Below, piece after piece: positions 3,001 to 63,544 of a stretch of 64,000 bases of DNA. Within the stretch, counting starts at the first letter, position 1. The number at the start of each line of letters is the position of its first letter. This DNA is from Blastocladiella emersonii ATCC 22665 (taxonomy: Eukaryota > Fungi > Blastocladiomycota): NCBI GenBank assembly GCA_025594325.1, contig JANHCV010000011.1, positions 1 through 64,000 on the forward strand, written 5' to 3'. A program made the translations under genes and the position numbers. The notes below the pieces were generated by a model, which saw only the letters and a program-made list of their open reading frames with translations, did not search any database and was not told the DNA's origin.

Positions 3001-5928
3001 GCGGAGCGTCGGGTCCTTGGAGCGGGCCTCCTCCTCGCCGCCCTCGCCCGTGTTGGACTTGCCGCCGAGCTCGTTCATGGCGCGCGCGAGCGACGTGTGG
3101 GCCTCGAGCGAGATGGACCCGTACGACATGGCGCCGGTGCAGAAGCGGCGCACAATGTCGGTCCACGGCTCGACCTCGTCGATCGAGATGGGCATGATGC
3201 CCGCGGCGGCCGACGGCACAAAGTCGAGGCACCCGCGCAGCGTGCAGCCCTCGACCTGGGCGCGCGTCGCCGCCACGTACTTGTCGTAGGCGCCCTGGTT
3301 GGCGGAGCGGACCGCGTCCTGGAGCGAGGCGATGGCGACGGGGTCGTTGATGTGGGCCTCGGACCCGGTGCGGTGGTGGTAGTCGCCCATCTCGGGCAGC
3401 GGGCGCGACGGCGCGACGACGGCGGTGGCTGGCCACGCGCGCGCGTGGAGGCACAGCATGTCGGTGGCGAGGTGCTCGAAGCCGACGCCCTGGATGCGGG
3501 AGGCGGTGCCCATGAAGCAGCGCGCGACGACCGACTCGTGGAGCCCGAGGGCCTCGAAGATCTGCGCGCCGCGGTACGACTGCAGCGTCGAGATGCCCAT
3601 CTTGGACATGACCTTGAGGATGCCGTCGACGCACGCGTACACGTACTTGCCGACGTCGGCGCCGAGCGCGAGCGCGGCCTCGACGACGAGGTAGGGGACG
3701 ATGGCGTCGGCGCCGTAACCGAGCAGCACGCAGTGGTGGTGCACCTCGCGGGCGTCGCCGGCGTGGACGACGAGGCTGACCTGGCCGCGCTTCTTGGTCT
3801 TGACGAGGTAGTGGTGCAGGGCGCCCGTGGCGAGGGCCGACGGGATGGCGACGGCGTCGGGCCCGATGCCCGCGTCGTCGAGCACGAGCAGCGTCACGTT
3901 CTCGTTGATGGCCTGCATGGCCTCACTGCACAGGCGGTCGAGGGCCTCGGCGAGGCCGGCGGGCCCGCGCGCGACCGGGTACACGAGCGAGAGGGTGCGC
4001 GACGGGATGCGGCGCGAGATGGCGACGAGCTCCCAGGGGAGCAGGATCGGGTGGTCGAGCGCGACGAGGCGGCGGTCGCCCGGGTGCTCGATGGCGAGCA
4101 GGTTGCCGGCGGGGCCGAGGATGGTGCGCGTGGACATGACAATCTTTTCGCGGATCGGGTCGATGGGCGGGTTGGTGACCTGGGCAAACAGCTGGCGCAT
4201 GTACTCAAAGACGAAGCGCGGCTGGCCCGAGAGGCAGGCGAGCGGGGCGTCGTTGCCCATGGATCCGAGGGCCTCCTTGCCCGTCTCGAGCATGGGCATG
4301 AGCAGGACCTTGACCTGCTCCATGGTGTAGCCGAAGGCGACGAGGCGCGGGTCCTCGTGCAGCGGCGGGAGCGGGCCGCGGGCGGCGAGCCAGGCGGCGC
4401 GGTCGGCGTCGGCGGCCGAGGCGGGGAGACCGGGGACGGCGAGCTGGTCGGGCCGCTGGAGGCCGAGTGCGTGGAGGATCTTGCGCCCAGCCGAGCGCTT
4501 GAGCTCCTGGTCGTCGACTACGCGGCCGGCGAGGGTGTCCACGAGCAGCATGCGGCCGGGCATGAGGCGGCCCTTGTGCAGGACGCGGCGCGGGTCGATG
4601 GTGACGGTGCCGACCTCGGAGGCGCACAGCATGGTGTCGTCGTCCATGAGGTAGTAGCGGCACGGGCGCAGGCCGTTGCGGTCGAGCTGGGCGCCGACGA
4701 AGCGGCCGTCGGCGAAGGTGACGAGGGCGGGCCCGTCCCACGGCTCCATGAGGGTGCTGGCCCAGGTGTAGAAGGCGCGGCGGTCGTCGTCGGCGGGGTC
4801 GGCCTCGGGGACCAGCATCATGACGGCCTCGGGCAGGGTGAGGACGCCGTTGACGACGAGCAGCTCGAGCACGTTGTCGAGGGCGGCCGAGTCGGAGCCG
4901 AACTCCTCGATGATCGGGTAGAGGTGGTCCATGTCGCGGCCGAAGGTGGGCGAGGCCATGAGCCCCTCGCGGGCGCGCATCCAGTTCTTGTTGCCGCGCA
5001 GGGTGTTGATCTCGCCGTTGTGGCCGATCATGCGCAGCGGCTGGGCGCGGTCCCAGGACGGGAACGTGTTGGTGGAGAAGCGCGAGTGGACGAGGGCGAA
5101 GTGGGCCGTGTAGCGCACGTCCTTGAGGTCGTAGAAGTACTCGTAGACCTGGTTCGGGTTGAGTAGGCCCTTGTAGACGAGGTGCGACGGGTGCAGCGAG
5201 CAGGCGTAGAACCACTTGCGCAGCGAGATGGCGTGGGCGGCCTGCTTGCGCAGGAAGTAGAGCTGGGTGGCGAAGCGCTGCTCGTCGAAGGCAGCCGAGT
5301 CGGCAGTGGACGCGGCGAGCGTGACGAAGGGCTGCTCGATGGCGGGCTCCTTGGCGAGCGAGAAGGGCCCGAGGATGGACGAGTTGCGCGGGACGCGGCG
5401 CCAGCACAGGACGCGCAGGCCGAGCGAGAGGGCGAGCTCCTCGAAGGCGCGCTTGGACTCGGAGTAGACGGGCTCGGCGGGGTTGAGGTACACGTTGCCG
5501 ACGGCGTAGTGGCTGAGGGGCGGCAGGGCGATGCCGTGTTGGCTGAGGACCATGGCGGCGAAGAAGTCGTGCGGGATCGAGGTCATGACGCCTGTTGTTG
5601 GGGCATCGAGCGTTAGCGGCTCGTCCCGTCTCGAGAGAAGCAGAGAGAGCGTACCGGCGCCGTCGCCGTCGCGCACATCGGCTCCCGACGCGCCGCGGTG
5701 GGTCATGTTGCAGAGGAGGTACTTGCTGGAGGGTGCGAGCGAGATGTCGGGTCAGCACTTGTCCGTGCGGGCATGGCGGACAGCGAGAGATACGCACGCA
5801 TCGGACACGATCTTGTGCGAGGCGGCGCCCTTGACGCTGACGAGGAATCCGACGCCGCACGCGTCCTTTTCGCCGTCGGGGCCCATGTACAGGCCCTGCG
5901 CGGGCGGGATGGCGTCGGCCCACGACAT
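1..5928 (-). CDS. GLT1: NADH-dependent glutamate synthase (GOGAT), 3' end runs off the window; introns 5797-5726 and 5654-5592
   Basis: Spliced N-terminus MSWADAIPPAQGLY..EKDACGVGF..HKIVSDAKYLLCNMTHRGA..DGDGAGVMTSIPHDFF. Downstream GATase (GHNGEINTLRGN), FMN barrel (EIKMAQGAKPGEGGELPG), GXGXG (NDYVGKGLSGG) and GltD-like (GSGPAGLAAA) motifs read in frame. Both introns GT..AG with GCTGAC/GCTAAC branch points. Confidence 0.97.
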
Positions 5929-6695
5929 GGTTGCGGTCGGAGGTGGTGGGTGCTGGTGGTGGTGGGTGCTGGAGCCGTCAACGGCTGGAGGTCGCGCTCG
6001 CGGAGAGGGTGGTCGGTGCGAGCGGGCGAGCGAGGGAGGTGTCGGCCGGCCGAGCAGCAAGACAGAACGAGTGGGGTAGTGGATGAGGCACACGAGCAGC
6101 GCGTGTGCAGACTAGATACAGAGCAGAGGGGGCGGGGGAGCGAGCAAGAGCGGGGGCAGGAGGGCGAGGGCGGCGGGCGGCTTTATGGATGCGAGCGGGC
6201 GAGTCGGGTCCGGGTCCACGGCAGCCGATGGTCGCGGGCGAAGAGCGGGAGCGAGAGCGAGGCCGAGAGCCGAGCGATGGATGAGGGCAGGCTGTGTCCC
6301 GGCAATCTCCGACTAGGTCCAAGGAGGGGGCGAGCGCACAGAACGCGACGCAGTCATTTGGATCGCGTGCCGCGCCGCGCCGCGCCGCGGGCATGTGAGC
6401 CGCCGCGCCCTCCGAGTTATCTGCGATAGCTCTCCCGGTCGCCAATCTCGGCAGGCGGGAGACGCGCGGGGCGAGATAGCCGGCCGCACTTTCACGCCGG
6501 CGCTGAAAATTCGCGCGACGCGTCGGCCCCGCGTGACGCGTGCAGGTGGCTGACGCGCGTGGCGCCGCGCGTCGCGTGAACCGCGGAATCGCCTCCGCCC
6601 ATCTCGCGACCGACGTCACCGCTCGCGGACAGCCCGGATCCGTATCGCTGTGGAAGAAATCTGTATTGCTATAAATCGCTAAATGGAACACTGGT

Positions 6696-9600
6696 TCACT
6701 CGCTGTCCTCGTCCTCGCTCATGGCCTCGTCCGAGTCGGAGCCCGAGTCGCTGTCGTCGCCGCCGATCAGGACCTCGGCCGGGCGCTGGATCACGACGCG
6801 GTCGACGAGCCCCTCGCCCATGCGCGCCACGTCGCTGGTCACCGCCTCGACGTTGGGCACCATGCGCACCGCGTCGCCGCCCGCCGCCGCCGCGTCGTCG
6901 TCAGAGTCCGAGTCGTCGGCCGCCGCACGCGAGCGCCGCGCCACCAGGAACTTGGCGTTGCTGACCTCGCCGCCCACGAGCGCCGCGTGGTCCCACCGCC
7001 GCGGCACCAGGCGACGCGGGTCGACCACCACGCCAACCACGCCGCCGTCCACGTCGTTGTGGAACGTGCGCACCAGCGACCCGTACGTGCGCGCCACGTC
7101 CGCCAGCCACTGCTCGACCGGGTTGAACCCCGGGTGCTCGGCCGCCAGCCGCGCGCAACCCGACACCACGTACGCGCCCACGATCTCGGACCGCAGGTGC
7201 ACCGTCACGTCGAACGCCGTCAGGTCCGCCGCCGCCGGCGTGTACACGGCAGCGAGCGCCTTGGCCTTGACCGGCGTGAGGTTGGCGCCAGCGGGGGAGA
7301 GCACCGCGAGAGCCGCCTTGGCCACGGCGCGCAGCCGCTTCATCGCCAGCAGCTCCACCGTGTACCGCTTGTGGTGCGAGGAGACCACCACCGTGCCCTC
7401 GGCGGGGGGCGCCACGAGTGCGCCCGTCGGGGGCCGCTTGGACGCCGCCTCGCGCTGCGCCTTGGCCGCAGCCTCCGCAGGCGTCTGCGCCGTCGCGCTC
7501 TCGTCCTCGTCGTCAGCGAGACTGCCGCCGTTGAGCGCCATGGCCGACTTGGACCGCGACGGCGTCGCCACCCGCGTCACCACCCCGAGCGCCTCGGCCG
7601 TCCACGGGTGCCGCACCACCAGCGCGAGCGTGCGCACCACCCCCGCCAGTGCGTCCACAGGCGCCGCAACGTGCTCCGACGCCGGGCTCGTGAACACGTG
7701 CGCCACTAGCAGCTCCGCAACGTGGTCGTGGATCTGGTACCCGAGCATGTGCCGCGCCACCAGGTACTTGAACCCGCGCACCGTCGCCGCGAACCCCGGG
7801 TACACGAGCGTCAGGTTGCTCATGTCGCCCGCGTGCCGCAGCTCGTCGCGCAGCGCCACGCTCGACTTGGGCTTGACCACCATCTTGAACGCGTACCCCG
7901 AGAAATCCACGTCCAGCGACAGCGGCGACGTCACCACCGTCGCCTTGAGCCCGTGCTTGGTCTCGAGCTGCGTCGCGTACTGCGCCAGGAACAGCAGCGT
8001 CATGTGGTACAGCGCCTCGGGCTCCGTCGGCCACTTGCCGCTCGCCTCGAGCTCGACCGCGAACGTGGCACGGTGACGGTGCGCCGCCACCGCCGTGCGC
8101 GTCAGCTCGGGCGACAGCGGGAGCACCGCCGCCACGGGCAGCGGCATCTCGTCGAGACCCGTGATCAGCGCCGCGAGCTCGCGGAACGCCTCGTCCACAG
8201 ACACGGTCGTCGCCGTGCCCGCCGCCGACGCGCGCTCAACGCCGCGCAGCAGCTTGTGCAGCGGGTGCTGGCCGTGGTGCGCCACACCGGACGTTACGCC
8301 CATGTGCCGCGCGACGACGTGGTCAATAGCCGCCGCCACGATCTTGGTCGGCGCCGTCTTGGCACCCCACGCCACCGACTCGAGGATCGAGCCGTCGGGG
8401 AACCGGCGCAGCTCGGCCTTGGCGCCCCACAGCCGGCGGAACGCGAGCGCCGCCGCCTCGTCCTGCGGGCTGGGCCCAATGTCGACGGCGCGCGCGTACT
8501 CGGTCGGGTGGAACACGAGCCCGAACGTGAGCGCGTCGCCGGGGGTGGCGGTCGCCGACCCGGGTGCCTCGGCATCAACTGACCACGTGGCCGTCGGGAA
8601 CGCGGACGGGTCGCCGACGTGCGCAATCAGCTTGACGCGCGTCGTCAGGGCGCGCGCGAGGAGACGCGGCACCGCAAGCGACAAAAAGTGCGCCAGCGAC
8701 GGGTCATCGAGGCGCACGCGCGGGTTGTAGAAGGCGGGCGCCGTCGCCGGGAGCGGGATGCGGACCAGGTGGTCGAAGGTCGACTGGGGCGCGATCTTGG
8801 GCGTGAGGAACAGCGCGCCGGCCTCGCCCGCGGTCGCGAGCGTCGCAGCCTTGGTCGCCTCGAGCTGGAGCCGCGTCGCATCCGAGCGACCGGCCCACGT
8901 CGTGAGGTTGACGCCGTCCTGGTCGACCATGGCCACCTCGGACACGGAGAAGGCGTCGGGATCGGCGTGGTCGCCGAGCATCATGAGCGGCGCGGCAAAG
9001 TCGTGGTTGGCGAGGTAGAACATGACGAGGCGGAACACCTGGATCGCCTTGAGGTCGCGACCGACCTGGTTCTTGAGCGCGAGCGCCGCCGCAAGGTACG
9101 ACAGCGGGAACGCCCACGCGTTGAGCGCGCGCTGCTCACACCACACCTTGATGAGCTTGAGCGCCTCGGGCAGCGAGCCGACGACGCCTGCGGCCTTGTG
9201 CAGCGTGTGCAGGTGGCTGAGCTGGTGCATGTCCGACAGGAGCGCGGCGTTATACGCGGGCGTCGCCGGGAGCGGGTCCATGGCGGGCGCGTCGGCCGCG
9301 GGGCGCACGTTGTTGCGGCCGGGCGCGAGCTTGTCGGCGTTGAACACGGTCGCCGCCACGGTCGGGCGCACGTGTACGACGGCGGGACCGCCGAGCTTCT
9401 TGGCGAGCGGCACGGTCACGGCGAGCATCGGGCGGCGCGTGTCGTTACGGTCGTAGGCAAACTCGACGCGCAGGCCGGCGGCCTTGAGGATGGACGCGGC
9501 GTGGGCGAGATAGAAGGCCCGCTTGTGGAAGTAGCGGTAGTTGAGGTGGTCCTTGGGCTGGAACAGGTCCGAGGGCATCTGGACCGCCACGTCCACGTTG

Positions 9601-16317: not shown

Positions 16318-18448
16318 CTGCAGCGTTGAAGCGAGGCGGGACGCGTCTCGATTTATGCGAACAATGGAGGATGGCCGCGGTGATCCAGGGCGTGGTCGCG
16401 CCAATCACCCGCGTGGATTCTCGCTCGCTGCGAACGCTCCCGCAAGAACAAGGAGGGCCGGGACACGTCATCGTGCATGCGATGCAATCGTGACTCAAGG
16501 CCACCTCACGGGCCCGCGCCGTGTGTCCCGCGGCTCCTCGATCGCGAGGCGGGAATCGGGCACCCTCGCTTGTCCCGCAGGGCGGCGGGCGGTTCCCGTA
16601 GAGAGCGTGTCTTCGGCCGCACGATGTGGCGACGGCGCTGGCGGGGGCGCATGAAGAGCGCGGTGGTGCGAGGGCTTGGCCGGCGACTGCGGCGCTCGCG
16701 ACGCGTCAAGGTGCGTCACCGTGCATGCAGGGGACTATCTCGGATATTTTCGGCGTTGGGCCGCGAGCCGAGATATCCGCTGCACAAGCGACAGAAGAAG
16801 CACGCAGGGAAGCGCGGTCGTGGAGACCAGGATCACCGTCGCATCACACACGGCCGCCGTCTCACGACGCGGGCCACGTCCACGCTGGCCACAGCCAAGG
16901 GTCAGCTAAGGTCGGACGACCGGCCCATCGCACAGCAGAGGACGGAAACGCGTCGCGACGCGTCCGGGCACGTCCGGGCGCGTCCAGCGAGGCGAGCGGG
17001 GACGGCCAGGAGGGGGAGTGGCTTGGATGCGACCACGGTCGCGTCAAACATGGGCGAGACGGACGAGGAGGCGGTGGCGGTCCGCGACGCGACGCGGCGC
17101 AAGCAGCCTCATTCGAACAATGGGCGAGTTGCAACGTAGGGATCGCGTAGATCTGGGGGTGAACTGTGAGAAGCGGGGAAGAAAACGGGTCAGGCGAGAG
17201 CGACTGCGGGCGCGGGCGGGCCCATGGCCACGGTCGGCAGCGCGCACGCGAGAGGGTTCTTGGGGGAGCGAGCAGGGCCGCAGCGTCGGTGGGCCGAGAC
17301 GCGCACGTCCCGATCCGCATGAGGAAGGACCAAGCACAAGGGCGAATGTGGGCGAGGACAAGGGAGGATCGAGTCGGTGCCGCGCCCGCTGCAACGCAAC
17401 GCCCCTGACGGCCACGGCCCACACGCAGCCGGGTCATACTTATGGCGGCGGCCGCCCTCTCTCTCCCCGAGCCTGCTCTTCTCCCTCGCGTCGCGCCATC
17501 GATCTTCACCTCGCTGTCCACCCGGGGCACCGGCCGACGTGCTCGCTCATACCCACCCACCCCCGCCCACGGCCGCCGACTTGGCCACTCGCCCGCACCG
17601 AGATACCCTACCGCCACCACCGCCACCACCGCGGCTGGCCCTTCCCCGTGCGTGTCTAGACTGTACTGGTACGCGCCTACGATCGTGTCTACTCCCCGAT
17701 CATCCCTCGCGGCCACGTCCGCCCTCGCCGTGAGCGGTGGCCCGCTTTGGCGCCGAGGCGGCGGGTTCACGCGCGCAGGTGGCGGTGGCCCACGGCGGGA
17801 TGCGTGCAGGACGCGATCGAGCCAGCGAGGCGGCCGGGCAGTGCTAGTCGAGAACGTGCACGGCAGCGGCGATAGGCAGAGCGCGGTTCACGAGTCTGGG
17901 CCCGCAAATCGGCTCCCCCGTTCGCCGCGCCCAACCCTCGCCTCGCTGCCTTTCCTCCCTCGCCCCGCCGCCCCGCCGCCCCGCCGCCCCGCCCTTCGCG
18001 CCCCGCTCGCGCGTGCAACGTCCTCGCCCTTCCGGCCGTGTCCCTCGTCCTGCGCGCGCGTGCGGGACGCGTCACGGTGACGGCGGCCATGGGCGGGACG
18101 CTGACACGCCGCGCGCAACGGGTGTCCGCGCGCACGTCGCTGTCGCGCGCGCTGCCCTCGATCCCGTCGCCGCCGCCCTCGTTGTTCGCGGGCACCGCCC
18201 TCCACCGCTGGTTTACGATGCACGAGATGGAGCGCTAAAACTGACATCACGCCCTCGACCGCAACTTGCGCGGGCAGAGAAATCTCGGCCGCGTCACGGT
18301 GAATCATCCGCGCGTCACCCATTGTTCTTTCCTTCGCGGCCTCCTCCTCAGCCCTCCGCGCTCCGCCCCCGCCCCGACCGCCCCGCCCTGCCTGCCCGAC
18401 CCGCCCCGGCCGTCCCCGCTCCTTCCCCCCCTCCTCCTCCTTTCCATC

Positions 18449-43978: not shown

Positions 43979-44821
43979 GCCATCAACTCTTCTGCCAACA
44001 CCAAGATCGCCGGCGGCAAGAACACTGGCACATACGGCGGCTTCCCGAGCTGCGCGGACCCCATTTGGGCGCACTTGTTCATCGCGATTGGCAGCATTGA
44101 CAAGATTGTCATGGGGGTGCCGGACTTGAACTCCGTGTTGGTTGGGTGCGACATGGACGACGCGGCCACAGCTGCGGCTCCGACAACCATCGCGCTCGCG
44201 GCGTGCACGCCCACCGCCATTGGTGACAACCAAGCCGGTGTCCCGACGTCTACCGCCAACGCGACGAAGCGCACGGCGGCGACTGCTGCCGCAGCCGCCG
44301 AGGAGGAGCACAAGGAGGGCGTCGTCAATGACGAGCCCAAGGCGCAGCCCAAGTGGCGCCGCAGCGGCCGCCTGTCCTTGTCGACCTGATGCACTCGCTC
44401 CCGCCCCAACTCTGTTCATTCCCCTCGCGCAGACTCGCGCAGACTCTTGTTTCCTCCCGCACAAAGATATACTTTTCGTTCTCCTACGTTCACATCGCTC
44501 CGATCCTCTTGAACTCAGAAGCTTGCAAAGCACGCGAGTCGGTGCAACGCGCTCCGCTTGCCCTTGAGTGGTTGGCGCCGCGCGGTAGTCTCGGTTCCAG
44601 ACTCCAGGGCAACGTGACCTTCGAGGCGTTGTCAAGTCAATCGCCGCCGCGTGACCCGCGGGCGCTCGTTCGGATCGACGGTGCTGGAGTCTGGTTGCAG
44701 TTTGCGTGGCGCCACGCCTCGCCTGTGCTTTCGCGCGCCCGAAACCCCCCCCCCCGCGCGCTCTGATCGCGCTCTAGCTCCCCAACCGCCTGACCTATCG
44801 CCCTCGGCGTACACTAATAAA

Positions 44822-47771
44822 ATGGAGTACTCGATGCAACCTATCGATCCATGTCAGTTGCAAGGGGTCAAGTCCCGCGCGGGACTCGCGGGAGTCGCGA
44901 GAGATAATTCGGCTAGGGTCGGGCCCGCTGCGTCGATGCTCGCCCGACTGCCCCGCCCACTTCGCCCGTCTCCTCCCGCTCTCCTACTGCATCATGAAAG
45001 TCGAAACGCACTCTATCGCACTGCCATGTCAGCTAATGCAATGGAATCCGCGGCGCAGGCCCGACCGGAGGGCCTGCTCCCGCACCATGACCAGATGGTC
45101 GAGACCGTCCTCTCGCTGGGTATCGACGAACCTCGACTCGAGCAGGAGCAGGTTCTCTCGCACCTGCTCGAGGGCCGCAGCGTGGTCCTCACTGCGCGGA
45201 CCGGGTTCGGCAAGTCGCTCATCTTCCACGCGATGGCGCAGCTGCTTGATGGAGAGATCGTCGTGGTCTTGTCCCCTCACCGCTCGCTTTTTCGAGATCA
45301 GCTGAGTCAGACGCGCGCGAAGGGCATCGAGGCTGCATCGTTTCACTCGGACGTTGCACCGAGCGACCGTGCGACGTCCCTGGCTCGACTGTTTAATGGT
45401 GAGGTCCGGATTGCCTTCATGACGCCCGAGTACTACGTGAACAGTTTCCACGCCGCTTGGATCTCGGAGCGACCCGCCACTCGCGTGGGCCTCATCGTCC
45501 TTGATGAGGCGCACCTCTTCGCGATCTGGTACGCAGTCTGAGCCTGCGTTCTCGTCGTTCGGAACGCATCGGCACGATGAACACGATGCTGAACGTTCTT
45601 CTCGCTCACTAGGGGCGATTCTACCTCGCAGTTCCGGCCCGAGTGCAAGCAACTGTTCAAGGCCCGCTCGCTGTTCCCCAATGCGCCTGTACTCATCATG
45701 TCGGCCACTCTTGGGAAAAAGCTGGAGCACAACATCACTCGAACTCAGCTTCAGTTTGGCAGTGACGATTACGTGCTTGTTCGCGGTCCGCTTGACCGCC
45801 CCGAGATTTACATTCGTCTCGTCCGCTCCAAGCATGCGACGACCATTCGGGATCCGGGCTCTTACGTATGCGTCTGCGCGACATCGCAACGCATCGCTCA
45901 TTCACTGACCACTAAGTCGCGCGTAGCATTACGAGTGGCTGCGCGACTACGTCATGTCTCTCAACCCTGCGAACGCGGCCAGCAAACCGCGCATTCTCGT
46001 GTACTTGTACGAACCGTTACTTGTCGTTGCCTTCTACGGCTACATGTGTGCGCTGAACCCGACCGCGGCCCCGCTTTTCGCGCATTACCACGGCGATCTC
46101 AATTCCGCGCACCACGAATCGGTGTACAACGACATGACAAGCAACGTTGAGCATGTTCAACCGCGAATTCTTTTCTCAACGCACGCGTTTGGCACCGGTG
46201 TCCATGTTCCCAACGTCCGCTGTGTCGTTTCGATCGGTAATACGCCATCCGGGGAGGAGGCGATGCAGATCATGGGCCGCGCAGGCCGCGATGGAAACCC
46301 GGCCGAGTTCATCATATACTATGCTGCTCGCAGCGCGGCTAGTGCAGCCCCGCCAGCGGTCAGCTCCTCTACTTCAACCAGCAACAAACCGATGGACTTT
46401 GTTGTTGACGCCTTCTTCCAGGGCCATGGCATCGGCGCTCCAAACGAGGACGCCCCGCCACCAAAGAAGCGTCCAAACCTCGAGTCTGAGCCCGCGCATC
46501 TTGTCTCTGAGCCCGCGGATGCAGTTGCCTCTGATCTTGCGGTTTCTGCTCCCGCTCTGCCTCTGGATCTTGAGCAACCTTCTAACTCCAGCGAGAGCTC
46601 CCCTGTTTGCGCACGTTCCGTCTTGCTTGAAATGATCAATGGAGTTCCGTCCAGCGATCATCTTGACCCGAACATTTGCTGCTCGACCCATGGCCATCCG
46701 CGCATATCTCCGATTTACAACTTCCATGTTGCAAGCGAAGATGCTCTGCATCGCTCGTTCGATTCGCTTCCTCCACCTCCATCATCCCCCCCTGCACCAA
46801 AACCAAAGGCTCCTCGTTCTCGAGTGGCTGGGCGAAAGCTCAAGGGGTTGGAATCGCTCCGCCATTTCTTTTCGAGCATCGTTGACCTGACAAACGAGCT
46901 TGGCATTGAGTTGTCCGACTGCAACGGTCTCAACATGTTTAATGTCGCCGACTTTTTGTCGGACAAGGAACTGGAACGGATAACCGCCAATGCGCATGTC
47001 CTGGCCGTCGTGAATCCCGCGTTTGATGCAGATATCCTGACCCGCGACTATTTGACTCCAGATTCTTCGCTTTTCGGACCTGACCATGTGGGACGCCTTC
47101 TCGAGCGCATTCGGCTGGCTTACACCGGGGCGTTGCCCAAGGTCGTGCCTAAGAAGGCCACCAAAAAGGCTGCTACATCGCAGCCAACCGAGGTTGCAAC
47201 AACGCAGCCGACCACGCGAACGGGCAAGGGCAAGCGGGGAGGCAAAGCCCAGCCTAAAGCGACCCAGGTCGTCGACCGCATGGATGTTGACGATCCGATT
47301 GCTCCTGAGCCGCAACTATCGGTGCCAGTTCCACTCTCCACGCCGCCGTCACTGTCGCCCGCAGTCTCAAACCCCGCTCCAGCTCCAGGATACGCGCCCC
47401 ACTTTGCTCCCACGAACATCCCGCTTCCTCAAGCTGCACCCCCTGCGACCTGGATTCCTTCTCATGCAGGCACGCTTCCCGCCCATCCGTATCCTCAACA
47501 ATTCGCAGCTCCCCATCCTGCCTCAGCTCCAGCTCCGTATATTTCGGCTAGTTCTGGCTATCCGATGTCTCCCCCGCCAACTCCTCGCTTCCCCGCCATC
47601 GACTTTTCGCCCGCAATGGCTCGGTACTTGTCCGTCGTGCACGGGATCAACGTTGCTACTCCTCAGCAAACTCCGATCGGCAATACTCAAGCTCAAGCGC
47701 CGCCGTTTACGCACGGCGCTGCCGCGGACCAAGCAACCCAGCACCACCATCCCGCGCCACCTGGCGCATGA
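44822..47771 (+). CDS. Element-encoded RecQ-like SF2 helicase, ~934 aa; introns 45529-45612 and 45866-45926
   Basis: ARTGFGKS, TPE, DEAH..W|GD..FRPE, SAT, LDRPEI, FSTHAFGTGVHVPNVRCVV, QIMGRAGRDG, C..R..LL..CC zinc remnant, Pro-rich tail. No stops after splicing. Confidence 0.9.
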
Positions 47772-47976
47772 GCCATGCATCTAGCCCAAATAAAAGGCTT
47801 CTATCATCATTTATTCTTGATTCGTCGATTTTGAGTTAATTTTTGCGACCGAGTGTCTCGGTTCGTGCGCGTGCGAGACGCGTCGATCAAACACGTGACT
47901 GCTGCGAGACACTTCTCACTTCACTCGCCGAGGCGCGCGCGTCCGCGGAACGATGGAAAATTCATATGTATTGCTC

Positions 47977-50926
47977 TTAAAATTCGTCGCTATCCTTGTC
48001 GAGCCCGGACAACTCGATTTCAATGATTTCCTCCTCGGGGTGAGGGAAAGCGAGGAGCTCGTCCGAGTTGGTGCTACTCTGCTCGCCTTGCCCCGCAGCA
48101 ACAGATGCAAGACTCGACCCCGGCATGGGATGCTTCTTCGTCACGTCCGAGTAGTCCCAGAGATCTACCATGAGGCTGGCGTCTCCCATTCGCTGCCGCC
48201 CAATGATGCTGAACGCATTGACGGTACCATCGTGCATGGGTTTCGGGTCGATAAGGCGCGAATAGATCAGGTCGACAGCCGGAGCACGGGCCTTGTCGCG
48301 AGCACGCTTATGGTAAGCGGACGGTGGAGAAATCGCGCACACGTTGTTGAACGTCGACTCGATGGCCTTAAGCTTGGGCATGGCGTGGACCAAATTGGCC
48401 GCGCTGTCAAAGGTAACGTTCGCGCCTGCGCTCTTGACCCCGATCTTGACAACACGGACGTGTTCCTCGACGTGGTGATCAATCGGGCGACAGGTGCCCG
48501 ATTCCGATTTGGCGGGATGCACAGAGCGGAGGTGAGTGGAGAGCAGGCGGTCGTACTCGGAATAGGCGCCAGCCTGACCACGGAGCTCGCTCATGATGGC
48601 GCGCTGGTAAATCTTGTGGTCCGAGCCAAGAAACGCAGCGAGAAGCGGTCGCTGGAGCCGAACCAGGGCGGGACCGTCGCCAGCGCGCACCATTTTGCTG
48701 AAATCGCGGAGGAGGAGCGCGGCCTGCAAGAACTCGCCAAGAAAAATGTGTTGCTGGGCACTCGCGGGCATGGGAATGGTTTCCTTGCTCGAGGAGCCGG
48801 AACCACGCTTCGACGCGAGGGGATTATTGCTGTAGAAATGGAGATCGGCGCTAAATGAAAGACGGGACGTTGATTAGTGGGTTCCACGAAAGCTGAAATG
48901 CGCGAGCAAGACGTACGGTGTTTTATAGTACACCCAGTTGGTCATGATCTTGTCGATCACAACAGCAATATCGTTGACAGAGAGCTTGTACGGGTCCGAG
49001 TCAGTCAGACCTCGAGCACGCTTGAGCTCGGCAAGCTCAAGCTTGAAGAGCGCACGCAAATGACACTCAAGCTTTCGGGGACGTACAAGCACATGTCAAG
49101 ATCCAACCTGTTCCTAGTTTCAGCAGCTCAGGGAGGCGTACCAGCTCGTCGATGATCCGCATGCCGGCGTGATACGTAATCTTGGCACGTTTGAGTTCCT
49201 TGCGCTGAGTAAGCTGTTTGTACCACGAGATGGACAGCTGGTCGGTGGGCTCACCCCAGAAGCGGTTCACAATCGCAGCAACGAAGTTGAACATCGTGTG
49301 CCAGTCCGAGGTGATGGGCACAATGGTGCTCAAATCCCCTCCAAAGCCGCAGTACTGTCGAGCGGCCTTTGCGGCCCATTGCATGAGAAAGGTTCCGCCA
49401 TCACCAAAGATGGGCTGCGTCGGGTGGCGACCAACGAGTCGCAGCACCTCGTCCAACACGTTGATCATGCCAGACCGCTCGCCTTCGTTCAGGTTAAGAA
49501 TCTCGACCACGCGGATCACAACCGGAAGTGTGACTGCGGGAGCTGTATTGGCGGGAAGCGCAAAGGCAGCGTGGCCAAGAACCCGAGCGTGGCCAAGGTC
49601 GGCCGCTGGCCCATCATTGCTCGAAATGTAATGCGCAATTTCGCGCCGAGCGCGCTGAAGGCGGGCCGAGCGGTCTGCCGGAGGCTCCAGAATGGCCTTG
49701 AGAGAGTAAGTAGGGGAGCCAGGCGTTCGCATAGCCGGCGTATCGTGTGCGCGAAGCAGGGCATTTCGAAGCGAGAGCTGCTCGGGCGTGAACGCGAAGT
49801 CGCACGGCTTTGGGACCTCAAAGGACAGGACAAGAGTCCAATTGTGCATGACCGAACCGTGAATCGAGGTCGATTCAGATGGAGACTGGTAAACATTGAC
49901 ATTGTCCATGGCAATCACGACAAGCGCTTTCGGATCAGCGAGGAGCTTCTTCACCGCGCCCCTGGCGCTCGTGGCCGCAAGGTTGAGGCTCCGATGGTTA
50001 GACCAGTCGGACGCTGTAACCTTCAGCTTGTTGAGGATTTTAATGACTGCGCGTGAAGCCCCACTGAGGTAATCGAGCATCATTCCGAGCGCCAGGTGCA
50101 GCGCAGAGGAGTGGCCATGCAGGAGGAAGTTGAGCGTCGTGATAATGAACATGTACGAAAGCATGGCGGGCGTTACGATTGTGGATGTCCCAGCGCGCTT
50201 GGATTGCGCGGGCGGCGAGTCGGACTCGTCCGAATCGAAGGAACTAGCCGATTCGTCAGAAGCTGGCGTCAAAGGGCGAGCCGCTGATTGTTTACGCGGA
50301 GGGGTGCTGATAGCTTTGAGTATTCTATAAAGCTGAGGGCAGATGTTCGCGCAGCGCTGGGCGATATCGCCCACGTTGAGCGCCTCAAAGTCGAGCTTTG
50401 TGCCAAGCTTCAGGTCGTTGGCGGACGCTTTGTTGAATCGTTCGAGCTCGGCATGAAGAAGCGGGATGGCCTTGGCGACTGGATCGCGGTCAATGGATGT
50501 ATCGATCAACTCAAGCAGCTCACCCCACTCGCGAGTAACCGACTCCTTGGTCGCATTTGGAAGGACGGCAAGCTTAGTATTCGCACCAGTCGGATCCAGA
50601 TCCGCACACAAGTCGATGTAGCCCTGGCGAAGGTCATCTGGCGTGAGACGCGCCAAGGCGGCCCTCGCGAGCAACTGACGATCAAGAGGTTTCCAGGGCG
50701 GGTCCCGCGGAATCGGTTGGACCATGCGACGCAAGAACCATCGACGAGGCTCCGAGTCGAGTCGCGTCCGGTCGCCCATTGACTGTACAGGGTCAGGGGG
50801 ACGACCACCGCTCGTTCCACTCCCGGCGGACGGTGCCGCGTCAGACGAGCTTGCCAAAGGGGCGGCCACCGTCGAACTGCGAGATTTCTTGGTCATAAAT
50901 GTCGGTTGCGATAGGTTAGGTTGCAT
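47977..50926 (-). CDS. Element-encoded DUF6589-like RNase H-fold (DDE) transposase, ~937 aa; introns 49141-49072 and 48916-48851
   Basis: IAMDNVNVY, LNLNEG, IFGDGGT, SDWH, VRAGDGPAL..FLGSDHKIY, RPIDHHVEEH. Spliced frame is stop-free; the first intron needs an AAG acceptor. Confidence 0.8.
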
Positions 50927-51609
50927 AGCAGCTCACATGGAGGTGCATTCGTGGAGCTTCATTGGAGAGAGCGAACGCGGTGGGCGCCGCGCGACTTGGC
51001 CCGCATCACTTCGTCCAACACCAGTCCCCTTGACCGAGGTCGACGCATTCAATTCTCATGAAGCAGGAGGAGCTCGGATTCTCATTATCCCGCCCAAGGA
51101 TTGGGCCTTGAGAGTGGGGCGCGAGGCCGCGCGGCTCCTCCCCGCTCAATCATCGCTCCGACCACATATTTTTCACATCCATGGGTGTCAGAATAAAGCC
51201 AGAAGCTTGTTGTACTCACGTATTGCCTTAGTTGTGAAGTTCATGTCGCGGGGAGTGAGGGCGGCGCCGCAAGGGCCCGCGCTCGAGCGGCTACCACAGG
51301 GCCGCGGCCTTCGATCAAGCCTAACTCCTCAGCGGCGCGGAATCAAGGTTTGTGATTAATACGAGCGTGTAGCCCTTGCAGAGACGCGTCGATTGATATG
51401 CATATAAAGCCGATCGGGTAAGGGGTGCGGGAGCAGGAGGTTTAGAGCGCAGATCGCTTCTGGGCCGAGCAAACTGCAACCAGACCGTACGAGAGACGCG
51501 CCGTGCAGGGCGCGGTCATGTGACTCCGGAAACGTGACCCCCACGCGACCGCTCTGGCCAGCTGGATCCGCACGGTCTGGCACCGAGACTAGCCGCGCGG
51601 CGCTTCTGC

Positions 51610-51785
51610 AGGTTGGGCCAAGGCCGATCACGTGCAAGGCCAGGACGCGTTGCGCCACAGCAGTCACATGAGAAACGACGCGTCTGTCACGCGTTTTTGG
51701 GTCGCTCACGTGGATCGCGCTCACGTGAGCGTCGGCACCCTATCCGGCAGCGACCCGGTCTAGAAAGAGGGCTTTAGCCCTCAAT
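51610..51785 (+). repeat. Module A, copy 1 (~180-bp dispersed repeat ending in a GAGGGCT-TT-AGCCCTC hairpin)
   Basis: GATCACGTG..ACGCGTTGCGCCACA..AAACGACGCGTCTGTCACGCGTTT..GCTCACGTGAGCG..GAGGGCTTTAGCCCTC. Other copies at 58047-58230 (-), 59878-60060 and 61140-61320. Confidence 0.88.
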
Positions 51786-52221
51786 TTGATTTTAATTATA
51801 CTTGAGACACCTAAACGCTGCTGTAGTGGGGGGGGTGCGTGCGAGACATGCAAGACACGCACGCGTCAAGGTCAGGTGTGGATCACGCCACCCACCGACA
51901 CCGCCTCCCACGCCTCTGCCGCGGCCCAACGCGCGGCGCACTCTTGCGCTTGGTTCCTGTTTGAGGATGGATGAAGCTGTTCCTGTTTGATACACTGGTT
52001 GATTTCCCCTGCAATACCATCCTGTCGCTGTACGTTGCGTGTATCCCGCTTCCCCTGTGCCTGAGTAGAATAGCAGGTTATGAGCCCTGGTGCAGCCTCT
52101 CGCCGCAGCTCAAGAAGACACAGGAGATGTCTTTCACGTAACCAGCAACCTCAAGCTGTCATGAGGACAGCAGGGGTAGAAGGCTCCGCCGGAAGGCGTA
52201 GAGCATGATGGTCGCTTGCCC

Positions 52222-57959: not shown

Positions 57960-58406
57960 CACGGGCTCCGTTTCCCAACACGCACACCAAGCCCGGGCTC
58001 CGCTGGCGACTTGACGTGTTTCTGCATCTCTCACGCGTTCATGTCGAGGGCTAAAGCCCTCTTCTTAGACCGCGTTGCGGCCGGGCGGGCTGCCGACGCT
58101 CACGTGAGCATGTCTCCCTCTGGTCATGTGAATGTCCTCAAAACGCGTGACAGACGCGTCGTTTCTCATGTGACTGCTGTGGCGCAACGCGTCCTGGCCT
58201 TGCACGTGATCGGCCTCGGCCCAACCCCCGGAAGCGCGTCGCTTGACGCTGTTCCGCTCGGCCACTGCGGAACGTTTAACGCTTTGCACCGATCCTCGAC
58301 CAGGCCCGCGAGACTCCGAGCACATGAAAGCGTGAGAGATGCAGAAGCGCGTTAAGCCGCTAATGGAGCCCGTGCTTGGCGTGCGTGTTGGAAAACGAAG
58401 CCCGTG
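57960..58406. repeat. 42-bp inverted repeats (57960-58001, 58365-58406) enclosing an inverted module A; MITE-like
   Basis: Arms 38/42 identical; no TSD found. Confidence 0.7.
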
Positions 58407-59705: not shown

Positions 59706-60254
59706 CAGCGCAAGCGCCCAACGTGGCGCGGGCTTTAGCCCTCGATTGAAAACCAGACGCGAAGCGTCTAGGTGCCTCAAGTATAATGCTTGGAGTATCG
59801 CGAGCATGGTCGCGGGTCGGTGTCTCACACCCCGCTTGACCTTCACTGGCCGGCGTCAAGCGCCGAGGTTCCGCGGGTTAGGCCGAAGCGGATCACGTGC
59901 GCGGCGGGAACGCGTTGCGCCACACCGGTCAGATGACAAACGACGCGTCTGTCACGCGTTTCGAGGACATTCACATGACCAGAGGGAGACATGCTCACGT
60001 GAGCGTTGGCAGCCCGCCCGGCCGCAACGCGGTCTAAAAAGAGGGCTTTAGCCCTCAACTTGATCCACCTAGACGCTTCGCGTTTGGTTTTCAATCGAGG
60101 GCTAAAGCCCGCGCTGCGTTGGGCGCTTGCGCCGTGCGGGTGCGCTTCCGCTTGAGTTGTGAGTAGGCGTCCGTTGAACGAGTCCTGAACATCGGCTCAG
60201 TGGCAATACCCGCCAGGGTCGTGGGGTGGCGCGTCGCAGCACAGCGCGTTGCAG

Positions 60255-61090: not shown

Positions 61091-63544
61091 GTCGGCCGAG
61101 TCCGCAGCTGGCGACATGACAACGCGTTTGATAAAGCTGACGCCAACCGAAGCTGATCACGTGCACAGCGGGGACGCGTTGCGCCACAGTGGTCAGATGA
61201 CAAACGACGCGTCTTTCACGCGTTTCGAGGCGATTTACATGAACATAGGGAGGCACGCTCACATGAACGTTGGCACCCTACCCGGCCGCAACGCGTTCTA
61301 AAAAGGGGGCTTTAGCACTCCATGTTAAGATCGCTGGGTGAGTGAGGGGGGGGGGGACGAGAGATGAATCAATTTAGCACAGCGCGTTCCAGCTTTGGAC
61401 GCGGTCGTGCGGTCACATCTGTCAGTCGATTCAAATGCAGTTTAGTCCTTGGTTTCGTCATTAGAAAAGACGCGCCCCTCGTTGTGAAAGCTGCTGGAAG
61501 TCCCCGCTCGTCGCTTGCCGCTTGCTGTCCTTCTCAGTGCTTTCTAGTCCGCAGTGGGCGCTCTCCGCGTGATCTGCGAGCCGAGGCTAATAATTTTGAC
61601 ACTGTGCCACTATCCGGCCAAACGAAACTTGATGCATCATTCTCCCTTGCCCGCGTGGGAGGTGTGACTGTTGCAGACGTGACGGGAGTTGATCACGCAA
61701 GTAAGCAGGCAATGAGTCCAAGCTTGCCAACATCCCCACGAGAACCTTAAACGTTGCTGTAATATCTATCCATTGCGCCTTGCAAGGTAATTTGCACTTG
61801 AGCCAGTTTGCAAGCTAAGCATGAAGGAAGTGGGCTGCGCGACCCGCTGGCGGCGGCAGGCTAGGGAGCTTACACGCCCACCACAGCGCTCACTTCACTT
61901 ACTCCCTCCACCTTCCTTGCATATTTTACGCATGTTTCAGGTGGCACTTGATACGATAGATTCAACAAGTGTACACTCTCCGGATTGCGCTCAATTGATG
62001 TCTTGTTGCGTGAACTGTGATATCCACTTGTGATTTGGCTATTTGCAGCTTCAGTCAGTCAATATGGTCGCTAACCAAGTTGGAGACCTGCCTTTGAGCA
62101 ATGAGCAATACGTTGCGCGCGCTGATTCATGGCTCTATCTATCGTGAAGCTGGCAGCAAACAAGTAGCATGGCGGCTCTAAGAGCGCCGCCATGTGGCAG
62201 ATAGTGGAGCTCAATTACGATGGGCTACATGTGCTCGTAGCAGCAACTCAAGCGCAGCCCCTCTATGACCCCATAGTTGAGCGAAGAAATAACATCCTTC
62301 GCAGCTCTCCAAAGTGGCCCATCACGCGTTCCATTTGCTCAATTGCGCCAACTAAAACAAAACCTATGCACTCGATTCAAGTCCAGAAGGTTTGAAGCGT
62401 ACCAGTTCAGTGCCGTGGGTGTTTTTCGTTGGTTGAGCGACCATCCCATGCGCACTTGCCAAGGAGCTAACATGACAGCACGCCCAGTACGAGGGCTCAA
62501 CAACTTCGCTTACAGCAGGCTCTCATTGTCCTTCAATGTCAGGGCCCGTTTGGTCCAAAAAAGCGTTCTGACGCCACATCACAACAAACCGCCAGAACAA
62601 GCTCGTTCCGCTCCAGCCTGTTCTGATCAGAACCGTAACCCAAACGTCACTGCCCTATTTTATTCTCACACTCACTGAGAACGCTCGCTGCGACCCAACA
62701 GAAGCGCTCAAGCTACAATATGCCTCAGTATGCCTTTTATCACCTTCATATACTCGGTTTTGTTGCTATCAGCACTTGCATCAGCGGATAGAGCGTGTTC
62801 AGCTCAGATACGGACATTGCGCTCAGTCTTGTTCCCATTCTTCACCTCCCCGCCAGAATGGACAAGCGCGCTTCTATCATGATCTTTTATCGCTACTTTG
62901 AGGCCTAAACAGCCGAGGTAGTGAGTGTGTATGCGGTTGTTTTGTGGTCAGGGCTCGCATGAACCACGCAGTTGGCGGTTTGCCTTAACGCTTCTCAGCA
63001 CTGACAGTATTACGCAGGGCGCAAACTGCCTTTCAGCTGTGCTGGACGCAACAACGATATACGTCGTTTATGGACGTCGTAGCGCGCTGTCTTTGCCAGG
63101 GACGCTGACCTCCTTGAGCTTGGAGGACGCATCAGGCGTATCATCAATGGAATGATAAGGGCCGTGGCGCGCGTTCCGCTTTTAAGAGTAAACGTAGCGG
63201 TGCTGTAGGTAGCAACGTTAATCATTGCTTTGGTGTTCGAAAGAGTGCTGCGCGGTCTGACGGACGCGGGGGAGCGGGCAAAGCGCAGGGGAGTGCAAGC
63301 GTGTACACAGCAGCCCTCACATAGGCGTGGGAGTAAGTACTTCCCATTTGCATATCTCTAGTCCGCGTTACCTTTCGCCTGACATCATCTCCATCCATGC
63401 GGACGCGACCCTGTTGTAGTTTAGGACCGTCGCTGCACAGCTGACGCCTGTACAAGCGGACGGCGACCTTTGTTCAAGGTGCCAAGGGAGCGCTGGTCCA
63501 GTTGGGTCAATACATTTTATTGTACTTTGCTGCGTAGAGCTGCG

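Follow-up and report, generated by a model that had tools for sequence, protein, structure and literature searches.

In a 64,000-nucleotide stretch of DNA from the fungus Blastocladiella emersonii ATCC 22665 (GenBank assembly GCA_025594325.1, contig JANHCV010000011.1, positions 1 to 64,000 of the forward strand; hereafter the window), we identified a 7,006-bp transposon at positions 44586 to 51591. The element has inverted ends, is bordered by a 9-bp direct repeat, and carries two convergent genes, one for a RecQ-like helicase and one for a protein of the Pfam family DUF6589. We are highly confident that it is a cut-and-paste transposon of the kind that combines a DDE transposase with a helicase. 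It likely represents a structurally complete, autonomous-looking AcademH-type element from a new and very divergent family. The AcademH kind is rare and has already been described, whereas this family is new. Beyond the family itself, the analysis adds an intact copy together with its empty site, assigns a fold to DUF6589, and shows that the tips are conserved across distant fungi.

Element boundaries, empty site, and target repeat

The borders of the element had been proposed in an earlier note made from the letters of this DNA, and the 16/17 inverted termini and the perfect 9-bp duplication claimed there were both reproduced. The 17-bp terminal inverted repeats agree at 16 of 17 positions when the left one is compared with the reverse-complemented right one, and the duplication is perfect and abuts both tips. 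A repeat search revealed an additional 22-nt inverted pair (91%) ∼100 bp inward of both tips. By our own arithmetic, one to two inverted pairs of 16/17 quality within 10 kb are expected by chance per 64-kb window, and the joint expectation for such a pair with an abutting perfect 9-bp direct repeat is ∼1e-5. The G+C content of the element interior is 0.54 to 0.61, versus 0.63 to 0.70 in the flanks. The boundary features and the repeat in which they lie are as follows.

44586-51591: whole transposon, 7,006 bp; inverted ends, 9-bp direct repeat, and two convergent genes
44577-44585, no strand: target-site duplication, left copy, GCCGCGCGG; identical to 51592-51600
51592-51600, no strand: target-site duplication, right copy, GCCGCGCGG
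44586-44602, plus strand: terminal inverted repeat, left, TAGTCTCGGTTCCAGAC
51575-51591, minus strand: terminal inverted repeat, right; its reverse complement is TAGTCTCGGTGCCAGAC
44689-44710, plus strand: subterminal inverted repeat, left arm, 22 nt, 91% complementary to 51464-51485
51464-51485, minus strand: subterminal inverted repeat, right arm, pairing with 44689-44710
44100-44585 and 51601-51818: flank repeat split by the element; paralogues at 58046-58237 (minus strand), 59860-60064, and 61152-61323

A match to GTCTCGGTGC at position 32619 was rejected as a chance occurrence; it has no TA before it and lacks an element-like context.

The earlier note had predicted that an empty site should exist, with a single GCCGCGCGG between the two flanks. 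Contigs of four public DNA runs (X1 to X4), all from one sample, were compared with window positions 44100 to 50099. In three of the four runs (X1 to X3), contigs followed the left flank as far as position 44585, where the left duplication ends, and then continued into CGCTTCCGCGGGTTGGGCCGAGGCCGATCA. This continuation is identical at 27 of 30 positions to window positions 51601 to 51630 (CGCTTCTGCAGGTTGGGCCAAGGCCGATCA); the three mismatches are all CpG transitions in which the window copy lacks the CpG. The empty-site contig has only one GCCGCGCGG, and the element is absent from it. Because these contigs join the left flank directly to right-flank-like sequence, they represent another copy or allele of the flank with one GCCGCGCGG and without the element, just as predicted.

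Could the segment instead be two host genes that happen to lie between a chance inverted repeat, with no mobile element involved? An inverted pair of this quality is, as calculated above, expected once or twice per window on its own, and long open frames are frequent in G+C-rich DNA. The abutting perfect duplication, the second, subterminal inverted pair, and the Tilletia elements, in which the gene pair, the ends, and the length of the duplication recur (see below), all argue against such a reading, which we consider vanishingly improbable and which the empty site already refutes.

The transposon was inserted into an older repeat copy at a G+C-rich site, GCGCCGCGCGGCGC, which forms a perfect 14-bp palindrome before insertion and of which 9 bp were duplicated. 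In the contigs of the public runs, the target flank is a multicopy repeat with a word depth above that of the element and ∼4% divergence. More diverged paralogues at 58.1 to 58.4, 59.7 to 60.0, and 61.0 to 61.3 kb of the window are continuous across the insertion point. As to the type of repeat, Pfam returned no match for the open frames directly beside the element. The element as a whole lies in a nest of repeats between two long terminal repeat (LTR) retrotransposons.

Relative to the majority contig copy, the left flank has 22 differences, and in 18 of them a CpG transition has removed the CpG from the window copy; inside the element, only 6 of 18 differences are of this type. We read the flank transitions as a signature of cytosine deamination, one that is much weaker within the element. 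Since CpG decay is stronger in the flank than in the element, the element is younger than its target. It also sits in DNA that appears to be methylated.

The helicase and DUF6589 genes

Two convergent, intron-containing genes with stop-free products had been claimed for the interior of the element, and both models were reproduced, with lengths of 934 and 937 amino acids (aa).

44822-47771, plus strand: RecQ-like helicase gene, 934 aa, ATG at 44822; exons 44822-45528, 45613-45865, and 45927-47771
45529-45612, plus strand: helicase intron 1, 84 nt, GTACGC..TAG
45866-45926, plus strand: helicase intron 2, 61 nt, GTATGC..TAG
47772-47976, no strand: region between the convergent genes, AT-rich 3' ends; end-like motifs at ∼47850-47911
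47977-50926, minus strand: DUF6589 transposase gene, 937 aa (working model); exons 50926-49142, 49071-48917, and 48850-47977
49141-49072, minus strand: transposase intron 1, 70 nt, GTACGC..AAG
48916-48851, minus strand: transposase intron 2, 66 nt, GTACGT..TAG

With both predicted introns removed, the helicase model reads through its 934 codons without a stop. Intron 1 is internally supported because its removal rebuilds, across the junction, the RecQ-typical motif DEAH..IW/GDSTSQFRPEC (the slash marks the splice). The product matches the Pfam families DEAD (2.7e-18) and Helicase_C (1e-9) and retains intact helicase motifs I (GFGKS), II (DEAH), III (MSATL), and VI (QIMGRAGRDG). In line with the RecQ-like helicase of ∼934 aa that had been proposed, RecQ proteins were its best matches: recQ and recQ_fam were the top NCBIfam profiles, with two halves at 68.1 and 39.6 to 43 bits, and the Protein Data Bank matches were headed by Escherichia coli RecQ (7.5e-14), followed by WRN, RECQ4/1/5, and BLM. 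Both halves fall below the 219.8-bit cut-off of the RecQ family TIGR00614 (recQ_fam), and Pfam detected no RQC, HRDC, or RecQ_Zn_bind domain in the protein. Residues 471 to 934 form a proline/alanine/serine-rich tail of ∼460 residues without a Pfam domain. A degenerate zinc-binding motif may be present, and no relatives of the C-terminal frame were found by a word-indexed homologue search.

Because the helicase scores far below the family cut-off, lacks RQC and HRDC, and is encoded within the mobile unit, which the empty site lacks, we interpret it as a RecQ-like accessory protein and not as the host RecQ/SGS1 orthologue. The alternative of a host RecQ gene in conserved synteny, which the earlier note had raised against its own proposal, is excluded on the same grounds.

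In the protein encoded on the opposite strand, Pfam identified DUF6589 (PF20231) in exon 1 (41.8 bits; E value, 7.3e-11), above the cut-off of 27 bits, and again in exon 3 (21.3 bits; E value, 1.3e-4). DUF6589 was the only family found, with no Pfam match to MULE (PF10551), hAT, or any other transposase family in this protein; among the five main open frames, none had a Pfam match to the XPG nuclease family. When 1.84 billion representative proteins were searched exhaustively with phmmer, only five matched at an E value of ≤0.001, the best at 26% identity (E value, 5.5e-8), and all five carry DUF6589 (9.6e-27 to 5.8e-65). A word-indexed homologue search returned no relatives of the 619-aa transposase frame, the 67 pattern matches that the transposase had in a metagenome scan included no relative, and exact-product look-ups of two long open frames retrieved no record. 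The window transposase is an extreme outlier of the DUF6589 family.

Four motifs had been proposed for this protein, namely D(MDN), D(GDG), H, and E(EEH). All are present, and the residues concerned (D341, D509, H543, and E775) sit on alignment columns that are conserved in the relatives.

D341: MDNVNVY in the window protein, FDN[VI]NIY in relatives
D509: FGDGG in the window protein, [TA]GDLL in relatives
H543: SDWH..FN in the window protein, GPWHLLLNW in relatives
E775: DHHVEEH..K in the window protein, DHYQEIL..K in relatives

The transposase gene also allows many other pairs of introns that keep the reading frame. A profile of 15 homologues aligned with aa 166 to 793 as one colinear domain (133 bits; E value, 3.4e-37 at Z=1e6). 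Since this single colinear match spans both predicted splice junctions, all three exons are coding. The ∼30 residues that follow intron 2 (ADLHFYSNNPLASKRGSGSSSKETIPMPA; window positions 48760 to 48850) have no counterpart in any homologue. Thus, the acceptor of this intron is uncertain and may lie further downstream, in which case the transposase may be shortened from 937 to ∼916 aa.

Related elements, conserved tips, and the fold of the family

For six DUF6589 proteins (L001 to L006), we retrieved the surrounding genomic sequence and recorded the presence of a convergent DEAD/Helicase_C gene downstream of each.

L001, Tilletia indica: present
L002, Tilletia indica: present
L003, GCA_029282285.1: no convergent helicase gene called nearby
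L004, Tilletia maclaganii: present
L005, Tilletia maclaganii: present
L006, Gymnopus androsaceus: present (fragments)

Hence, a DUF6589 gene and a tail-to-tail helicase gene occurred together at five of the six loci, in the same arrangement as in the window element. At L002 (RDSI01000347.1, locus positions 178 to 7808), TTGTCTCGGTACGAGACGCC and an inverted copy of it lie 7,631 bp apart, and the gene pair is flanked by a perfect 9-bp duplication, CATCGCAAC. The tip of this element, TTGTCTCGGTACGAGAC, is identical to the window tip, TAGTCTCGGTTCCAGAC, at 14 of 17 positions; with both sequences anchored at termini, we calculate the chance of such a match at ∼1e-6. Contig L001 is the element itself, starting with TTGTCTCG and finishing with CGAGACAA. 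The proteins of the window and Tilletia elements are 21 to 25% identical, and the tip recognition sequence is therefore far better conserved than the proteins. The helicases, at ∼25% identity, are no closer to each other than the window helicase is to bacterial RecQ. Tips are partly palindromic in both lineages (GTCTCGG..CCGAGAC or CCAGAC).

The T. indica tips (L002:178-260 and 7727-7808; L001:1-58 and 7669-7717) contain the palindromes GTCTCG-GTA-CGAGAC and GTCTCGG-C-CCGAGAC, and an extra GTCTCGTGACAC motif lies ∼40 bp inward of each tip. Clear element ends were not found when L004, L005, and L006 were searched; these copies may be old or may have different termini. Beside the T. maclaganii helicase gene of L005 there is a perfect 46-nt inverted repeat (L005:15238-15283 and 17256-17301) with arms 1,972 nt apart, which is probably another small transposon.

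End-like sequence is also found between the two genes of the window element. GTCTCGGTTC at positions 47855 to 47864 is identical to the core of the left tip, CGAGAC occurs at 47874 and 47905, and the cluster as a whole, ACCGAG-TGT-CTCGGTTC (47850 to 47914), resembles two abutted element ends. Each Tilletia end has two to three GTCTCG motifs, whereas each end of the window element has one, its cluster of three being intergenic. About 50 bp of this region (47864 to 47914) is multicopy, as many contigs of the sequenced sample join or leave there. The cluster may serve as an internal site for transposase binding, may be left over from a nested end, or may be an unrelated small repeat. A lone contig joint between 47898 and 48586 ("skips 687") was disregarded, as one of its sides is only 22 letters long.

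Does the DUF6589 protein have the RNase H fold that had been claimed for it? The AlphaFold model of window exon 1 was poor (predicted local distance difference test score [pLDDT], 43). It has the RNase H order of strands and helices: D341 lies in strand 1, and D509 follows directly after strand 4. Because the window's own model was too poor, the fold was searched with a relative, P0005 from T. indica, whose model has a mean pLDDT of 72 and reaches ∼90 in the core. In Foldseek, Hermes chains were the top matches of P0005 (E value, 3.6e-4; probability, 1.0). Alignment of P0005 with VIA-align gave the following scores.

Hermes (hAT): Z 10.8
P-element transposase: Z 8.9
ISCth4: Z 7.5
Transib: Z 6.9
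RAG1: Z 6.7

Essentially all structural matches of P0005 above Z 4 are DDE transposases, and residues 262 to 728 superpose on Hermes residues 143 to 609. Because P0005 matches Hermes, the P element, ISCth4, Transib, and RAG1, the predicted structure identifies DUF6589 as a family of RNase H-like DDE transposases in which, as is the case for the hAT, P, Transib, and RAG1 enzymes, a helical domain is inserted into the core. The proposed fold is thus found in the model of a DUF6589 relative, and D341, D509, and E775 of the window protein fall on conserved columns.

DUF6589 is distributed over fungi, molluscs, and arthropods. In Pfam the domain is nominally of unknown function; it has a Hermes-like DDE fold and usually adjoins a convergent helicase gene. 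Proteins that carry it appear in public fungal annotations as "hypothetical" or "DUF6589 domain-containing," and a preprint (10.1101/2025.10.24.684071) discusses a possible role of the domain in virulence or in epigenetic regulation. Our analysis links it to transposases by its fold and to transposons by a gene arrangement that recurs. For fungal genome annotation, where such genes are entered as hypothetical proteins or as helicases, the link is a practical warning.

Mobility, mechanism, and classification

In word depth, the element contigs of the public runs exceeded those of diverged relatives by a factor of 3.6 to 5 (23.4 versus 4.6, 146 versus 28 to 29, and 512 versus 143), and they break off at the element end. 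Compared with the window copy, they differ at ∼13 sites in 3.6 kb (∼0.36%). These data suggest that the genome contains a handful of near-identical copies. Among the differences between copies, 10 are nonsynonymous and 5 are synonymous. More distant sequences include a diverged-relative contig with 88% identity over positions 44683 to 44928 and an 8.3-kb contig in which the similarity is limited to the outermost 66 bases at the left end. In run X4, contig ends at 45819, 46502, and 48738 carry a loxP-like linker (ATAACTTCGTATA..TATACGAAGTTAT), most likely a technical remnant of a library linker left in the reads.

We infer that the family was active recently. Activity is favored by the perfect duplication, the near-perfect ends, the two open genes, the presence of all catalytic and ATPase motifs, and the word depth. 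That the family is mobile today is a tentative proposition, to which we give somewhat less than an even chance. A complete but immobile young relic, silenced or disabled by missense changes and with frames that are intact through youth alone, is a serious possibility, though also short of even. In favor of such a relic, the copy is enclosed by two LTR retrotransposons, the CpG transitions of the repeat around it are a sign of methylated, silenced DNA, and it differs from the majority contig by ∼0.36%, mostly at nonsynonymous sites. Set against this are a duplication that is still perfect and ends that still agree at 16 of 17 positions, two long stop-free genes in which every catalytic and ATPase motif is kept, CpG decay that is minor inside the element (6 of 18 differences) relative to the flank (18 of 22), and a depth that suggests several near-identical copies.

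If the element moves as its parts suggest, the transposase would recognize the tips by their conserved T(A/T)GTCTCGG sequence, probably bind the subterminal inverted pair as well, excise the element, and join it into a target cut with a 9-bp stagger, at which gap repair would produce the 9-bp duplication. The helicase would act as an accessory factor that opens the partly palindromic ends or the target or that processes intermediates. According to PMC10045372, helicase lineages have duplications of 9 to 10 bp and nuclease lineages have duplications of 3 to 4 bp. It is chiefly this contrast that hints at an influence of the accessory protein on the reaction. A bolder scenario can be drawn, one that we regard as speculative and, taken as a whole, unlikely. 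It holds that the family is mobile in this culturable zoosporic fungus, that a required helicase unwinds or extrudes the tips for a hAT-like transposase, that this would explain the 9- to 10-bp versus 3- to 4-bp duplications, and that the internal cluster is a working binding site. The helicase-unwinding part of this scenario is based on the conserved, partly palindromic T(A/T)GTCTCGG tips, shared with basidiomycete elements of ∼20 to 26% protein identity.

To our knowledge, AcademH elements are among the least studied types of DNA transposon, and neither their mode of movement nor the role of the helicase has ever been shown. The window provides a copy with exact boundaries, two apparently unbroken genes, a matching empty site, and perhaps near-identical sister copies. 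Since the host can be grown in the laboratory, the element is a candidate for the first AcademH transposition assay, with and without the helicase.

How firmly can the element be placed? The AcademH lineage was defined by Kojima 2020 (Mobile DNA 11:15). Our assignment was made by architecture and duplication length as these are described in PMC10045372 and PMC10799480. There, AcademH elements have a helicase and duplications of 9 to 10 bp, AcademX elements have an XPG nuclease and duplications of 3 to 4 bp (PMC10045372), and AcademH is found at low copy number in Basidio-, Asco-, and Mucoromycota (PMC10799480). In a survey from 2017, the catalytic domain of Academ was still without a matching Pfam family, and the single blastocladiomycete covered, Allomyces, had very few DNA transposons (PMC5751038). 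The window element agrees with AcademH in having a separate helicase gene, a 9-bp duplication, and inverted ends around the coding region. It differs from AcademX, since the XPG family is absent from its five main frames and its duplication is 9 bp and not 3 to 4 bp, and from KolobokH, since its genes are separate and convergent and its duplication is 9 bp. For Mutator-like (MuDR) elements, the 9-bp duplication alone would fit, but the MULE domain PF10551 is absent. The AcademH-type architecture that the earlier note had put forward is therefore borne out in its helicase, 9-bp duplication, and inverted ends, with the DUF6589-helicase pairing recurring at five of six loci. From these architectural features, we consider it likely that the element belongs to AcademH.

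An alternative is that this is a real transposon but not an Academ element, with the DUF6589 enzymes forming their own superfamily or, for example, a Mutator-like lineage, and with the helicase gained independently. Mutator-like elements also generate 9-bp duplications, and ISCth4, which is IS256-type and Mutator-related, is among the structural matches (Z 7.5). Pfam, however, finds only DUF6589 in the window protein, with no MULE, hAT, or other transposase family. Kolobok elements make 4-bp TTAA duplications, and the separate, convergent window genes likewise set the element apart from KolobokH. The latter still bears on the question because it also carries a RecQ helicase (PMC9587614), so that helicases have been captured more than once. 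Against an independent origin, a separate helicase with a duplication of 9 to 10 bp is the published description of AcademH (PMC10045372), and the occurrence of DUF6589 in fungi, molluscs, and arthropods matches the range in animals and fungi that is reported for AcademH. Overall, we judge a non-Academ origin to be improbable and retain the AcademH assignment.

Several points weigh against the interpretation that we prefer. The step from DUF6589 to Academ is circumstantial, built on architecture, duplication length, and the fungal and animal distribution; a literature search on DUF6589/PF20231, with the defining Academ papers outside its reach, found no link to Academ. The fold argument depends on the predicted structure of a relative that is ∼20 to 26% identical to the window protein. 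Common descent of the window helicase and the Tilletia helicases is not supported by an identity of ∼25%, no higher than that to bacterial RecQ. All four introns are models only, and transposase intron 2 has alternatives. Contig word depth is a rough guide to copy number, and the differences between copies show no purifying selection, a neutral pattern that is expected of transposon copies and is silent on function.

The element shares features with several known systems. Its helicase has motifs I, II, III, and VI and the W-G..FRP motif in common with the cellular RecQ proteins (E. coli RecQ, WRN, BLM, and RECQ1/4/5), and differs from them in its scores (68 and 40 to 43 bits versus 219.8), in the lack of RQC and HRDC, and in its proline/alanine-rich tail. 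In Hermes, the P-element transposase, Transib, and RAG1, a helical domain is inserted into an RNase H-like core, as predicted for DUF6589. In contrast to them, the DUF6589 core is 8 to 11% identical in sequence and lacks the hAT dimerization domain, and the duplication is 9 bp. The hAT elements have 8-bp duplications and that dimerization domain, and Transib elements have 5-bp duplications. We know of no helicase carried by Hermes, P-element, Transib, or RAG1 elements.

KolobokH is a fungal DNA transposon lineage with a RecQ helicase, as here, but its helicase is encoded downstream of the transposase domain (PMC9587614), whereas the window genes are separate and convergent. AcademH elements have inverted ends, a DDE transposase with a separate helicase, and a 9- to 10-bp duplication, and they occur in fungi at low copy number, all of which fits the window element. 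The likeness is one of description and not of transposase sequence comparison, the window transposase being extremely divergent, and the host, a zoosporic fungus, stands outside the Basidio-, Asco-, and Mucoromycota named in PMC10799480. A close counterpart is the L002 element of T. indica. Its proteins are annotated only as hypothetical proteins; it is in the 7.6-kb size class and, like the window element, combines convergent DUF6589 and helicase genes with a 9-bp duplication.

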